From Trichosphaerium sp. ATCC 40318 (lineage: Eukaryota; Protista; Tubulinea), in the NCBI GenBank assembly GCA_038496445.1, contig JALMLS010000537.1, positions 1 to 64,000 of the forward strand: a stretch of DNA of 64,000 bases, in the 5' to 3' direction. The position numbers and the translations under genes were made by a program. Below are positions 7,793-15,800 of this stretch, one piece after another; positions within the stretch are counted from its first letter, which is position 1, and every line of letters starts with the position of its first letter. Below the pieces are notes generated by a model. The model was not told where the DNA came from. It searched no databases and was given only the letters and a program-made list of their open reading frames with translations.

Positions 7793-8586
7793 TTATAGTT
7801 TGTTCTTTAAGTACTTTAGTTTTCCATCTTCATACCAGCCTTTAATATCTCCATGTCTTTTACCATCAACCCACATGGACTGGTCTGAAGTTGTCCACTT
7901 TCATACCATCCTATACTTTCGCCAGTTTGTTTACCATTGACCCACATGGATTGGCCTTCAAGTTGTCCATTCTCATACAAATCTCTACGTTTGCCATGTT
8001 GTTTGTCATTGGCCCACATGAATAGATACTGTAATTGGCCATTCTTAAACCATCCTTTACTTTCACCAGTATGTTTACCATCAACCCATGAGGCTTGTCG
8101 CTCAAGTTGTCCATTGTTATGCCACTTTTTAAATTCACCATTTAGTTTACCATTAACCCACATGGCATGGTATAGTAGTTGTCCGTTGTCATACCATGCT
8201 TTATTTTCACCATGCTGTTTATCATTAACCCACATGGATTGGACCTGAAGTTGTCCACTTTCATACCATGACAACCACTCACCTTCTTTTTTACCATTGA
8301 CTTGTATGTACTGCTCCTTGAGTGATCCATTTGGATACCATTCTTTAATCAACCCATTTACTGTGTATTGATGAGACTTCACCTTTCCACTTTTATACCA
8401 TCTTATCCATATCCCTTTTCTTTGTAATACTTCATTAAAATGAGTATTTGTTGCAGCTCTCTTTGATAGAGTGTGGAATTTCGTGAATGTTTCAACGTTG
8501 AAAGTACAAATATAGGTTTGAAGTTCACATGGAATATCCAATAAAGTCAAAGCATGCAATTCATTGCACAATTTTCTTTTACACAA
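7793..8586 (-). pseudogene. F-box-like + MORN-variant (YwqK-type) repeat protein, intronless, 1-nt deletion near the 3' end
   Basis: LLDIPCELQTYI is followed by ~8 repeats of WYxNGQL-x-x-x-MWVNGK-x-GE. The last repeat continues in another frame (QSMWVDGKRHGDIKGWYEDGKLKYL, stop at 7793-7795). There is no in-frame ATG. Confidence 0.8.
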
Positions 8587-9966
8587 GGGACTAGAATACT
8601 ACGAAGAAAAAATGTTAGATAATAGTACAAAAATATTATCTTGTGTCAGTCAAGCTAGGCTGCTGGTTTGTTGGCCTTTACTGTTGTAAGAACTACAAAT
8701 AAGTAGTTTTGTACTGAGTAAAAAACTGGATTGACTGGTTCGCACTAGTTTCAAGAAATTTGGCACGTGACGCGTGATATGTCCTATTTCTAAGAAATCA
8801 CGTGTTTTTGCGCCGTTTTGTTCTTACAGCATAAATCAAATAAAAAAAAAACCCAACGGGTAGTTGTGCTTGTTATTAAAGCATAGCCTCAAAAACAAAG
8901 CTAAGGCGCAGTATGCGCATCGTACGTACCATGTGCATAGTGAATAAATACTACAAATCCTATTACAACGCGATCACTGCTTGCCGTGCCTTGGAGACTT
9001 GTTACGCCTTCCGAGAAATGTATTGCTGGTTGCTTACTAGGAACGACTTTTTTTTTTACCACGTCTGTAGAAAACTGCCAACTAGTGTCTTAGTACAAAG
9101 TGCAAACGTAAGTATCGTGAGTACTATGAAAGGCTACCACATGACGGTAAAGCCACCTAATTGTCACTACTTGCATTACAAATTGACAACAGTTGTTAAT
9201 CCTTAAAGTATCCAGCTGGCAATTCATAACAAATTCATTGTGCTGACTTGTATGTCCTGGAAGAAATGTAATATGTAAGACTTGACTGAATTCTAACACA
9301 TCGTAAAGGGTTTTATTTTGGACTAAAAATGAGAATAATAAACATTAGTGAGACGGAGATGTTAGCAAGAAGATTGAGCTCGCGTTGAAATCCTTTGACA
9401 AGAGCGCAGCTCCCGAGTCGCTAGAAGAATCCGAACATCTATGCAAAGAAAGGAGGCTCTTGACTACTATCGGTTCAATAGGTACTATACAAAGAGTAAT
9501 TGTGCTCATTGAGTACCTATAACATATCTAAACTTGGTCAAGTGAACAATCTGGACAGATACAAATACATTGAGTTGGTAGAGAGAGGGTGAAACGCACA
9601 TTCTGATTACATCACTGAGATCATGACGATGGATGATTACGAAGCATACGTATGAGAAAATCGTTACTACCCAATAGTGTAAAGAAGAGAATTTGAGACA
9701 AGAGCACGAAAGCATTGGACAGTTTTAAACCTATTCCGTATACGTTTAGAACAAATGTTGATAATCTCAGCTTGGGTTCTTGGGTACTACCAAGCATAGC
9801 ACAATTCTTAGAAGCTCCGAAGAGTAAAAGGAATATCGCAAGAGTGTATCAATCCTCCTTAAACAGGTAATACGAGCAAAAAGAAAGGGTTTAAAAAATA
9901 AACTCCATTGTGTACTTTAACTATGTTGTCTTTATTTGATTAAAAGCACAGTAAAGTTGTTAGTGA

Positions 9967-10374
9967 CTAACAGCTTCCACAAGCAGCTTCGCTCCAGCAA
10001 CACCATTTATCACTTCTGATGCGAAAGCATAATGGAGATCCAGGGTAGCAGTATGCAGTTGAACCTAATAAAGGTAAGTACTAAGAAGTTTGCTACCACT
10101 TTTGGATTTTCACGTACATTGACCATTCTTTTCACGACCACGTTTACGCCATCCAGGAGGACACCATCCATTTGTATCACATGTTTCGCCACACAACAAT
10201 GGTCCTTGCTAAATGGGGCGTTAGTTAACATACAATGTAAAGTAGCAATAGACATACCTCAGTTGATCTCTTTTCGTGCATATCTGGCATTTCTTCAGAG
10301 TCTTTAGATTGGGTCGTCAAGGCAATTGGTATCAACGCCAAAGTCACCAATAAGAATAATGTTGTTGTGTTCAT
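9967..10374 (-). CDS. Secreted cysteine-rich peptide precursor, copy A (3 exons)
   Basis: MNTTTLFLLVTLALIPIALT signal, acidic propeptide ending EKR, and two GT-AG introns. Mature sequence STEQGPLLCGETCDTNGWCPPGWRKRGREKNGQCSTAYCYPGSPLCFRIRSDKWCCWSEAACGSC*. Confidence 0.9.
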
Positions 10375-10721
10375 TTGTTGTTTGTTTGAAGAAGAGGTTT
10401 GTTGTTGGTTGTTGTTTTGTATTTTAGTTTGAAATCCAGTTTAAGTTAAGTCTGATTATTCACTGAAATAAAGTATCGTAAGTCGTTTACCTCATTTCTT
10501 TTTCGCTAAATCTTTTATCCATAATCTCTTTGGTATCAATACAGCAAACAAAAATGCTATTATATTTGTTTTAAAACAGTATTAGACAGCATAACAAAGC
10601 TTCAACCCGATAACATATTAATAATTTACCGTAACATTTCACATGAAATGCAGACTTAAATTATATTGATATCTTATTATAAATACAAACCATAACAAGA
10701 ACAACCACACCTCATAGAACA

Positions 10722-11122
10722 ATGAAAACAACTTTTCTTTTCGCTTTTGTACTCATGGCATTAACTGTTGCCTTGGCGACCCAATCTAAAGACTCTGAAG
10801 AAATGCCAGATATGCACAAAAAGAGATCAACTGAGGTATGTCGACCCCTACTTCTACATTGTATGTTAACATGCCATTCTAGCAAGGACCATTGTTGTGT
10901 GGTGAAACATGCGATACAAATGGATGGTGTCCTCCTGGATGGCGTAAACGCGGTCGTGAAAAGAATGGTCAATGTATGTGAAAAATCAAAGAGTAGCAAA
11001 CTTCTTAGTACTTACCTTTATTAGGTTCAACTGCATACTGCTACCCTGGATCTCCATTATGTTTCCGTATTAGAAGTGATAAATGGTGTTGCTGGAGCGA
11101 AGCTGCTTGTGGAAGTTGCTAA
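10722..11122 (+). CDS. Secreted cysteine-rich peptide precursor, copy B (3 exons, 100 aa)
   Basis: Exons 10722-10835, 10883-10973 and 11025-11122, with introns of 47 and 51 nt (GTATGT…AG). Signal peptide, propeptide ending KKR, and the same 65-aa 10-Cys mature peptide as copy A. Confidence 0.9.
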
Positions 11123-11354
11123 GATAGCAAAGTCATACTTGTTATACCAATTAACACGTTGTCTATCATAAACCTGTTTATTAAAAACATCAAACATTTC
11201 TCTCGTTGTTTTTTTGTTCTCCTCCACCTTTTTGAATTAAATCACTTGAATTTTAACCACTAACTAAACCGTTGTACTTTTTCCGTTTAGACCTTGGGAA
11301 ACTGATGTATTTTTAAAAGTCAACAGACTGAGAATACGAACCTAACCTCGTAAA

Positions 11355-12030
11355 TAAGTTCTGTCAGATTTTGTCAGTTTTGATAAATCTTGCAAGAACT
11401 GACAGGTTTGATACCAACTTATGGAACCAGTGCAATGTGAACGCATCACACTCTACAACTCCAATCAAGGTACCGTGCTTGCCGTCCTTATGCACATTAA
11501 GGCAAGATGAAAAAGCACTGTGTCAAAGTCACATCATCTAACAAGACGATCGCAGTATTTTTCTTAGGTGCGCTCATTACTGCTCACCAAGGAGCTATAA
11601 AAACGGGTACAAATTAATAATGCTTTTTTACAAGTTAACTTACTAGCACCAGGCGCGAAAGCTGGCACATTCAGGCGTAAAGAGGAGTATTAACTGCGAG
11701 AAAACGTTAAAACCTCAAATAAAATTACAAGCGCTTCCAAAGTATCTTGCGCTGAGCGTACGGTATTAACATACCGTAATAATCTGTTTTAAAGTATAGG
11801 AGACAACTGTTGGACCTCAGAGGTAATCAGAGATGTTAACAGGACCAAATAAAATAATGGTTAAAAACACGTGGTCGCAATAATATGTATGCGTTTTAGA
11901 CGTAGATTTAGTTTTGTACCAGAACTGACAAGATCCGTCAAATCTTGTAGTTTTTAACAGATCTTGCAAGAACTAACAAGATCTTGTAAGAACTAACAGA
12001 AGTTGCAAGATCTGTCAGATCTGACTAAAC
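11355..12030. repeat. Two patches (~11355-11410 and ~11920-12030) of short repeats built from TCTTGCAAGA / AGAACTGACA / AGATCT
   Basis: For example aatcttgcaagaactgacag (~11386) and agatcttgcaagaactaacaagatcttgtaagaactaacag (~11959). A related patch lies at ~46830-46920. Confidence 0.5.
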
Positions 12031-12844: not shown

Positions 12845-15800
12845 TTATGCAATCAGCATAGTTTTTATTATTGTTTGGATAACAGGATTATGACAACTAA
12901 TATCAAGGCTTTGATCTCGAATCTTATCTGATAAGAGCTTATTCATCTTTTTACGCAACTTGTTCATAAGCACAGCTAAAAAACTAGTTAAAAAAATTGT
13001 GTTTTTTCAAAAAGAAATTTGATTGGCGGGATGTGCACAAAACAATTAACAAAATAAATAGCTCAAGTAGGTTTGTTATATACATGTAAAAAAACTCCAA
13101 GGAACAAAAATTCCTGAGCACAAACATCACGTGATGTTGAATTGTAGGAAACATTTTTTGAACCAAAAAAAAGATTTTTTTGTTTCTGTCTTCGTACCCA
13201 TTTTCCCAGGTAACTGAAAACTCATCCACTTATCAACATATACAGTTGGTTTAGAGTCGTTCCCATTTATTCTCACATCAACATTTTTACCAAAGAGTAA
13301 TAATGGAAATGGAGAAATCATAGTAGTGCCATGAATGAAAACTTTCGATGTTTTTACTTTTTCTGTAAAAACAAACCAAGTTGTTGGGAAGTCCTTCAGG
13401 GAGAAATTGACAGAAGATGGATGAATAAATACACTCTCACGATTAGCTAGTTCATATCTCCATGCTCTCTTAACGTCTATAAAAAGAGAGCAGTTAGAGA
13501 AGAGTAAACCACAAAAAGATGCTTACTGTCCCTATTTCTGACTTTCGCTTGAGCAACATTTGGGTATAACCCAGCAACAAGAATAGCTTTAATGAGTTCA
13601 ATATTGTCACCATTCTCATTATCTCTTTCGTCACCTGATCCAAAACCTGCTTCTCTAACAAGGTTCCTACAATTTGATACGTTAAGAGTTGAGCTTATTG
13701 TTGCTTAGAATAAAATTCGTTTTTGTTGGTTCATAGACCGATGACAAGTGAGTTAACGTACTTGAACTCTCGCTTCAATTTAGTAATAGTGTCAAGTGTT
13801 GTTTTAGATAAGTAGTGATCTCTACAGAACCTTGATCGATCTTTTGCTCTTGTTTCCCTTTTGAACAAATGTCAGCAATCGCAAACAAAACAACACTGAC
13901 GACAATAACGCGGGGAGAATTCAAAAAGTTTAACCACTCACATGTACTCTTCATAGGCATGAAGGTTTGCTATCAAGTCAGAGTTTGATCCACCAGAGAT
14001 GTTTTTCTTCTCAGCGTTGGCTTGATCTCTGTAAAAAAGTTAATTATATTGAGAACCAAAAAAAAAAGAAAAGACACGTGTACCTTTCATCAAAATTACT
14101 AACAAAAGGTGTACGAAGTGTCAACGATGCACATATAGTCAATACAGAGTCTAAACATCCAAATATCGATGCGAATAACATCATCTTTCCCATTTGTGCT
14201 TCAACCTAAACCCGTCTTTAATTTTCAATCCAAACAAAACAAGAAAAAATCATGAATCTGGTTTGATTGTAGTACGGGTAGTTTAGCAAGATGTATGCCA
14301 AGTGGTGATAAATTTTCAGCTTCATCCATAGCGCCTATTCCTATTAAGGAATGTTTTGAATGTTGAATGGCAGAATCAGGAGGTTTTTCAAGTGCTCTCG
14401 ATAAAAAGTTGCTAAAAAAAAGCTGTTAGAGGTATCAACCTTTACCTTTTTATGAAATAACAGACTTTGAATAGTCCAAACAACACAGGCTATTGAATGA
14501 CAACAATAAAGTCGTGTTCAAGTAAAATAACTAAAAGAATAACTTACTCGATTCTTCCAAGTTTAAGCAGACGGATTTGCAAACACAGCTCATCCAATGG
14601 TACACGTTTGATCTCAGGTACTTCATATTCGGCCAAGCGACTCATTTGGATCTCTGTAACAAGATGGAAACAGAAACCAGGCTTGACACGACCTGCACGA
14701 CCACGACTATAAAAAAATAAGAAAAAGAACTCTGTTATGATCTATACCGTTGTCGTGCTGATGCTTGAGAGGCGTAAACCTCTTGAAGAGAAGCCAGTCT
14801 AGACTTTGAATCCCATGTCTTTTGTTTAGCTTTACATGTGTTGATAACAAAGACAACATCATCAATTGTTACAGATGTTTCTGCAATGTTTGTTGAAATG
14901 ACGATTTTTCGTACACCACGTGCTGGGCGCCTAAATATCTTGTTTTGGTCCTCTGAATATTACGCATTAGTATTGTTATAAAGTAAAAAAGAAACATACC
15001 TGTTGATAGCGAAGAATGGAGAGGATAAACATCAACTCTATTGGTTCGAAAGAAACTTTCATCTAAAATATCATGGTAGAGTTTTCTAATCTCCGCCATA
15101 CCAGGCATAAAGATGAGTATCTATAATGCAGTGAGTGAGCACATTAAAATTGTTCAATTTGTAACATACGGCTCCTTCTTCGTATTGAGAGCAGATGTGC
15201 TTCACAAGTTGAACAATGAGGTGGTTGTTAATAATTTTTGGATCAAGAGCCTCCAGAGCTCTTACAACGCTGCTAGAGTATTTCTGCTGATACATTTCTG
15301 CTTCCCTTTATTATAAATCAATTAATAAACAATAAGGATAAAGATGAGAAGAAAAACGTACTCTTGTTTTAGAGTTTTTGGCTTCTTTCGAAGAACAAAC
15401 TTGTTTGTAAGCTGTTTTGTGTTGTATTTTGTTTTAAATAGAATGTCTTCCAGAAAATATTCTTGAACAGGATGAGTAAACCCAGGAATCTCGATTTGTG
15501 GGCATTTGAAGTATGAAGCAAATAAATCAGCATTAACCTAAGAAATACGAAATAAATGAGATAATAAGAAAATATTAAGAAAGATATAAGGAGTTCATAC
15601 AGTGGCTGACATAAGAATAATCTTCAGGTCTTTTCTTTGCTTGATAAGTTCTTTCAATATAATCAACAAAAAATCACTACAGAGAACAATCAGAAGAGGT
15701 TCTGAGGTTTTTCATAGAAGGGTTGTTTTTTTTAGTACCAGTTTAAGTCACGCTCATGAACTTCATCTAGGATTACATGTGATACGCCATGTAGAAATCT

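Follow-up and report, generated by a model that had tools for sequence, protein, structure and literature searches.

What do the two small genes at 9967-11122 of this DNA make, and why are there two of them? The window, by which we mean the whole stretch of 64,000 nucleotides from Trichosphaerium sp. that was analyzed, is eukaryotic DNA with a G+C content of about 36%. We read 9700-11400, translated the candidate exons, and obtained two divergent three-exon genes, gene A (9967-10374, minus strand) and gene B (10722-11122, plus strand), with 347 bp between their start codons. This is the layout that had been proposed from the letters alone, which placed the two ATGs about 350 bp apart. The features of the pair are listed below.

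10374-10258, minus strand: gene A exon 1, encoding an N-type signal peptide and a propeptide ending in HEKR, then STE
10209-10257, minus strand: gene A intron 1, 49 nt, GTATGT...TAG
10208-10118, minus strand: gene A exon 2, 91 nt, encoding QGPLLC...NGQ and the first base of a split Cys codon
10065-10117, minus strand: gene A intron 2, 53 nt, GTACGT...TAG
10064-9967, minus strand: gene A exon 3, completing the split Cys codon with two bases and adding 31 residues in a C-C-CC-C-C framework
9967-9969, minus strand: gene A stop codon, TAG
10375-10721, no strand: shared intergenic region, 347 bp, candidate bidirectional promoter
10722-10835, plus strand: gene B exon 1, a hybrid of a Q-type signal peptide and a D-type propeptide ending in HKKR, then STE
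10836-10882, plus strand: gene B intron 1, 47 nt, GTATGT...TAG
10883-10973, plus strand: gene B exon 2, 91 nt
10974-11024, plus strand: gene B intron 2, 51 nt, GTATGT...TAG, containing in-frame stops
11025-11122, plus strand: gene B exon 3, ending in a TAA stop

All four introns have GTATGT or GTACGT at the 5' end and TAG at the 3' end, and the second intron of both genes splits a Cys codon 1+2. The products, 101 aa for gene A and 100 aa for gene B, read in the order signal peptide, short propeptide ending in (E/K)KR, and mature peptide. The mature peptide is identical from the two genes; its 65 residues include ten Cys in the spacing C-3-C-5-C-14-C-4-C-6-C-8-CC-5-C-2-C, four Trp, two Tyr and one Phe, and an RKRGREK loop. 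Its computed mass is 7.2 kDa and its pI 8.05, and with 8 K/R the net charge is only about +1.4. The Cys pattern, the four Trp, the RKRGR loop and the (E/K)KR site of the original prediction were all found in the translated models.

The two genes were then compared with each other. Over the 65 mature codons we counted nine synonymous and no non-synonymous differences, exactly as had been stated, and such a result (9 of 9 changes synonymous, with 40 synonymous and 155 non-synonymous sites) has a P of about 6e-7 under neutrality. The genes also have different stops (TAG in A, TAA in B), and the residue next to the KR is E in one and K in the other; their introns agree to about 85-90%. The similarity between A and B begins at a sharp edge halfway through the signal peptide and reaches no further than the stop codon, in agreement with the claim that the signal peptides have diverged. 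Two antisense open frames, 10032-10307 (plus strand, 91 aa) and 10712-10999 (minus strand, 95 aa), overlie the peptide genes; neither is itself a gene, and their likeness to each other follows from the inverted repeat. At 7816-8586 on the minus strand there is also a 256-aa open frame with repeats of the form 'W(Y/V)xNGQL...G', which resemble MORN repeats.

We searched the window's own 70.3-Mb assembly (642 contigs) in six frames. About 48 matches to exon 2 and about 50 to exon 3 were obtained, most of them 100% identical as protein, and an exact DNA motif for WCCWxEAxC occurred at 46 sites in the assembly, whereas a control pattern gave 0. The peptide family comprises about 46 genes. The original prediction had called the two genes a duplicated pair; the two copies are real, but they are not private and form one unit of this family. 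All 45 matches to exon 1 in the assembly lay at family loci, and the idea that the leader exon is common to other peptide families was rejected on this ground. We examined 44 copies in detail, a set that leaves out the copies on contigs C3, C131, C32, C185, C584 and C601, and 37 of the 44 gave clean three-exon models. Both window genes show the features that define the family, namely three exons, conserved intron positions, the QGPLLC...WCCW scaffold and the ten-Cys spacing, and precursor length across the family is 96-104 residues.

The window's form of the mature peptide, with no difference, was the commonest (16/37 models). It was followed by a form with one change, S1A (8/37), and one with two changes, S1A and N31R (5/37), and single-residue variants with one further change each accounted for 3/37. 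A second subfamily (5/37) has a mature form of 66 residues that ends in CGQTC and shows six to eight changes. The leaders fall into distinct types. N-type leaders have a signal with LALIPIAL and an acidic propeptide with EEMPDM; Q-type leaders have a signal with LFAFVLMAL and a net-basic propeptide, QSNELSERAKR; K-type leaders occur chiefly in singleton genes. The acidic propeptide that had been noticed in the window is thus one of two propeptide types and does not describe the other, which is net basic. At least 11 head-to-head pairs were found, with 307-359 bp between start codons, and nearly all of them join an N-type to a Q-type gene; an exception is a subfamily-2 pair on C55, with 863 bp between start codons.

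The window-type hybrid of a Q-type signal with an acidic propeptide recurs on C287 and C465. Over more than 3 kb of flank these two contigs are 93-95% identical to the window, including the 7816-8586 flank and the peptide pair, so that C287 and C465 are either haplotigs of the window or the result of a young segmental duplication. Several pairs stand in arrays, in which the tail-to-tail spacers are 76-87% conserved. The conserved array spacers and the long flanks of the window indicate that the family grew by block duplication and not by transposition, and carriage by a transposon was rejected for the same reasons. Block duplication also bears on the suspicion that the pair is non-functional repeat DNA or the cargo of a mobile element, merely gene-like, which the many repetitions and the two arms, forming an inverted repeat of about 400 bp, might raise. 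The shared array spacers and the more than 3 kb of shared flank count against this explanation, as do the transcripts, the pattern of substitution and the fate of broken copies described below.

Expression data came from two small public runs, X1 and X2, which consist of contigs only and are labelled 'RNA?'; these were compared with 9900-11200. One X1 contig joins exon 2 of gene A to exon 3, with its joint from 10062 to 10116, and skips exactly 10065-10117 (53 nt). The ends at this joint are CT..AC on the plus strand, which is GT..AG on the minus strand. Contigs of both X1 and X2 have exon 2-exon 3 joints at 10116-10118 and 11025-11027, exactly on the exon edges, and contigs that reach 10210 go straight on with the sequence of 10260-10275, crossing the junction of exons 1 and 2. 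No intron-free copy of the family exists in the genome, so the intron-free contigs came from spliced RNA. The loose ends of the X1 contigs are identical letter for letter to paralogues in the assembly, namely the 3' UTR of the gene on C152 and the 5' UTR of N-type genes on C99, C287 and C518; therefore, X1 and the assembly come from one organism, and transcription extends at least to both subfamilies. An N-type paralogue transcript in X1 reaches at least 98 nt upstream of the ATG. The X2 contigs show the same joints in a slightly different sequence, in which the propeptide ends in ...ERAKR and is followed by ATE. The peptide genes are spliced and expressed, at the level of the family, the contigs being short and common to several paralogues. 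The original prediction would have been refuted by RNA without splicing or expression, which is not the case for the family, and exactly spliced transcripts are not what gene-like repeat DNA would give.

Purifying selection had been proposed from the two genes of the window, and the family makes the case for it far more strongly. The 32 main-type genes have 31 distinct mature coding sequences, with 33 purely synonymous variable sites. In pairwise comparisons among them mean pS was 0.25 (maximum 0.53) and pN was 0.011, which gives a pN/pS of 0.043. Divergence was 15% at third codon positions, 1.7% at first and second positions, and about 30% in introns, and the 3' flanks of the family genes could barely be aligned. 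The high pS, the intron divergence and the low pN/pS together show that the copies are old and that the constraint is on the protein and not on the DNA or RNA. The mature coding distance is 0.032 within a pair versus 0.058-0.062 between pairs, that is, about half, and N-type and Q-type genes are intermixed in a tree of the mature coding sequences. Thus, gene conversion evens out the mature region, and the leaders keep their separate types.

Once selection is lifted a copy decays, as is seen on C25, C36 and C152. In the C25 copy at about 341005 (C25:339505-342531) an A-rich insertion cuts off exon 2, and exon 3 has suffered a deletion along with five replacements; the long A-rich tract follows another open frame and looks like the tail of an inserted retroelement. 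In the C36 copy (gene at 255045, minus strand) exon 2 ends 6 nt short, so that GQ is lost and the splice phase is broken. The C152 copy (at 15037, plus strand) has exon 2 but not exon 3. Weaker or stop-containing single-exon matches at C3:769035-769115, C131:123566-123646, C32:407184-407273, C185:18403-18647 and C601:4903-5140 are probably further pseudogenes or divergent members. A repeat that is merely gene-like would hardly confine its variation to third codon positions, with a pN/pS of 0.043, or decay once it is broken, and we regard the explanation by repeat DNA or mobile-element cargo as scarcely credible.

The intergenic regions of 10 pairs align over their full length, with the strongest blocks next to each ATG and in the center. 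Conservation over at least 10 pairs is what a shared promoter would be expected to leave, and together with the paired layout it points to a bidirectional promoter, as the original prediction had it. Its reading of the pair in terms of dosage also fits, given about 46 copies of one product. The silkmoth chorion A/B genes and the histone H2A-H2B and H3-H4 pairs are likewise arranged head-to-head over a shared promoter of about 300 bp in multicopy arrays. In those systems, too, concerted evolution goes together with purifying selection and dosage, a likeness of layout and not of homology. The Trichosphaerium pairs differ from them in that the partners give the same mature product, a small secreted peptide, and are distinguished only by the leader that is discarded.

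These data suggest the following scheme. The two window genes are a unit of a family of about 46 genes, probably amplified for dosage, that encodes one invariant and presumably secreted peptide. Most of the genes stand in N-type/Q-type head-to-head pairs around a conserved promoter of about 350 bp, and the partners are probably switched on together. Each mRNA loses two short introns, and the precursor would enter the ER co-translationally by means of a cleavable signal peptide. A kexin/furin-type convertase would then cut after the conserved KR, releasing a mildly basic peptide of 65 residues and 7.2 kDa that is presumably locked by five disulfides. Purifying selection is strong and, aided by gene conversion between the partners, keeps the mature part fixed while leaders, introns and flanks drift.

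Several findings bear on the processing steps of this scheme. An N-terminal signal peptide could be read directly in 37/37 complete models, with a basic n-region, a hydrophobic core and small residues at -3/-1; in one example M-K-T-T is followed by a 15-residue hydrophobic core and A-L-A. The KR is followed by (S/A)TE in 37/37 models, across two unrelated propeptide types. The P_proprotein domain (PF01483) gave three matches in the genome well above the cut-off and a fourth just above it, and as judged from these matches the genome holds at least three P-domain convertase genes. By the exon layout the N-terminal half of the peptide, with four Cys, is set apart from the C-terminal half, which has six in a C-C-CC-C-C framework. 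The sole loop in the family models that tolerates replacements (K24R, N31R) sits at the exon 2/exon 3 border. Internal dibasic sites are present in the RKRGREK loop (10130-10150, minus strand, and 10940-10962, plus strand), as RKR and, in the N31R paralogue variants, as EKR. A second cut at these sites, which would yield two disulfide-linked chains, is possible.

A second cut of this kind is part of one alternative for the function of the peptide, namely that it is a signalling molecule, such as a pheromone or an autocrine or hormone-like factor, which acts on a specific receptor and may be cut again at RKR/EKR into two chains. Recognition by a receptor would agree with the extreme constancy of the sequence, and the prepro layout with its dibasic site, as well as the extra dibasic sites in the one loop that tolerates change, would suit such a molecule. 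Trichosphaerium has a fibrous test and a complex, possibly sexual, life cycle (PMC10521059), the latter being in keeping with a signal. However, signals seldom need about 46 gene copies, and no receptor candidate is known. We consider a signalling role improbable.

Homology searches were made exon by exon, with single exons or open frames as queries. No match to any exon was found in Pfam at E values up to 10, and phmmer with both exons against all PDB chains, also at E up to 10, returned chance matches (AVR-Pik, MBD6; E of at least 0.67) or none. In a word-indexed library of 5.8 billion proteins nothing was found with the exon-1 open frame, with a paralogue open frame spanning exons 1 and 3, or with the 61-residue exon-3 open frame among candidates of 34-107 residues. 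An exhaustive HMMER search of exon 3 against 1.84 billion representatives gave three matches, which were rejected as tandem-repeat proteins in which weak stretches add up. Degenerate-pattern scans of metagenome, viral and prokaryote-genome contigs revealed no relative; one metagenome match (L062) was a chance 'SCDTNGWC' inside a membrane protein and was rejected. Look-alikes from the ESM Atlas (gallidermin, spider toxins and cyclotides) were also rejected, their scores of 0.76-0.85 (below 0.9) being at chance level. A full-text literature search with the peptide motifs found no paper, and the published draft genome paper for Trichosphaerium sp. (PMC10521059) makes no mention of such a peptide. 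Gene prediction seldom recovers a peptide of this size when its coding sequence is split over three very short exons, and therefore absence from the protein libraries is weak evidence of absence in nature.

With exon-wise queries, then, Pfam, PDB, the protein libraries and the contig collections gave no relative, and the original prediction that the peptide belongs to no known family has stood. As far as sequence comparison can tell, the family is without detectable relatives, although its class, a secreted disulfide-rich prepropeptide encoded by a multigene family, is a familiar one. Its way of evolving is unusual, for about 46 old genes yield a single product, the head-to-head pairs are heterotypic, and an invariant payload goes with a variable leader. 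The families that the original prediction had set aside on account of their Cys spacing, defensins, macins and acanthaporin, were not found here either. The defensin/macin signature is absent, for the peptide has CXXXC but no CXC, and CC instead, and there is no Pfam match; similarity to acanthaporin or saposin-like proteins is likewise absent at the sequence level, with PDB chance matches or none and no Pfam match.

Among known systems, some of the closest are peptides of other amoebae. Amoebic pore-forming peptides act against microbes or prey, and acanthaporin, from Acanthamoeba, is a five-disulfide peptide with ten cysteines. The amoebapores and naegleriapores, which have a saposin-like fold, and acanthaporin are, like the peptide described here, small disulfide-rich amoeba peptides made from precursors with signal peptides and encoded by several paralogues. 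Compared with these pore formers, the Trichosphaerium peptide has another Cys spacing, a far higher copy number and an invariant product. A second comparison is with the knottin and conotoxin superfamilies, multigene families that share the layout of signal, propeptide and dibasic site. The knottin C-C-CC-C-C framework is present in the exon-3 half, as C-6-C-8-CC-5-C-2-C, but this is a pattern match only, and the Trichosphaerium peptide differs from knottins in having a last loop of only 2 residues and four more Cys upstream.

AlphaFold prediction of exon 3 alone (pLDDT 62) placed a hairpin between Cys II and III/IV, with CFRIR against KWCC, whereas the knottin hairpin is at V-VI, where the peptide has its loop of 2 residues. 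In this low-confidence model hydrophobic and basic side chains alternate along the CFRIR/KWCC hairpin. Two-chain co-folding of the exon-2 and exon-3 halves gave a score of 0.04, which counts neither for nor against a contact between them.

Small, rigid, secreted peptides with several disulfides are also found among enzyme inhibitors, and the peptide, with five predicted disulfides, could be a tight-binding inhibitor of a protease or other enzyme that guards the cell, or the test around it, against foreign hydrolases and those of the amoeba itself. In size and number of Cys the peptide resembles TIL or antistasin-type domains. But the Cys spacing does not fit the usual patterns of TIL, antistasin or Kazal domains, there is no Pfam match, and the reactive loops of inhibitor families usually vary, as the mature part of this family does not. 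We think such a role quite improbable.

The reading that we prefer, though tentatively and at rather less than an even chance, is that of an effector, made in abundance, that attaches to membranes or cell envelopes in defense or feeding, and we put it forward only as a working hypothesis. It would be released into the medium or into food vacuoles, where it would serve in defense or in killing prey. Four features led us to this: a basic loop flanked by Trp, the hairpin, the many gene copies, and an organism that lives by grazing. The activity would reside in two parts of the surface rich in Trp and Arg and held by a rigid scaffold, namely the GWCPPGW-RKRGREK loop and the amphipathic CFRIR/KWCC hairpin. 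Tachyplesin-type beta-hairpins and the Trp-rich domain of the ten-Cys puroindolines are Trp/Arg-rich antimicrobial elements. The alternating CFRIR...KWCC hairpin and the Trp-flanked basic loop on a disulfide scaffold are reminiscent of them, a likeness of short motifs only; the net charge is much lower than that of tachyplesins, and no homology is detectable.

Several considerations stand against the effector. The net charge of the peptide, about +1.4, is low. An invariant surface fits a specific partner or self-assembly better than a general attack on membranes. Moreover, toxin and antimicrobial families usually conserve the signal and diversify the mature peptide, and knottin and conotoxin families, which keep the signal and vary the toxin, are of this kind; in the Trichosphaerium family the mature part is frozen while signal and propeptide vary. 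This combination of a variable leader with an invariant payload reverses the usual pattern of cysteine-rich effector families, and it weakens the antimicrobial or toxin label of the original prediction and, with it, the effector reading.

The same invariance would be readily accounted for if the peptide were a structural or lectin-like unit, made in bulk, that self-assembles or cross-links the polysaccharide fibers of the test or cell coat. Nearly every residue is invariant over about 30 old paralogues, as if the whole surface made contacts, and the high copy number would suit a bulk material, as with the silkmoth chorion or histone gene pairs, whose loci the divergent, gene-converted pairs resemble. 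The peptide is rich in aromatic residues, like small carbohydrate-binding modules, and Trichosphaerium does have a fibrous test to build (PMC10521059). However, no carbohydrate-binding or matrix family was matched in Pfam, and the peptide is small, with no repeats and no low-complexity sequence. On these grounds we judge a structural role unlikely.

A bolder version joins parts of the structural and signalling alternatives. The peptide may have a new fold whose whole surface is engaged, either as a self-assembling or polysaccharide-cross-linking unit of the test or as a two-chain, convertase-cut ligand of a receptor, and would then not be a generic antimicrobial. This is doubtful, though possible; if true, it would explain why about 46 old paralogues keep 65 residues fixed while their surroundings drift.

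Whatever its role, the peptide family is among the most amplified single-product protein-coding families that we can point to in an amoeba, and such amplification suggests that the peptide is probably one of the major secreted products of the cell. It offers a clean case for how selection and gene conversion jointly freeze a peptide. As a 7-kDa, five-disulfide, Trp-rich peptide from a marine grazer, it is cheap to synthesize and can be tested as an antimicrobial, as a lectin or as a new scaffold.

The family is missed by gene finders that cannot handle very short exons. The copy on C12 (gene at 655887; L041:5694-6122, plus strand) is one in which everything from exon 1 to exon 3, introns included, forms a single open frame of 143 codons that reads exon 2 out of frame, and from this copy a gene caller blind to introns would report a false 143-aa protein.
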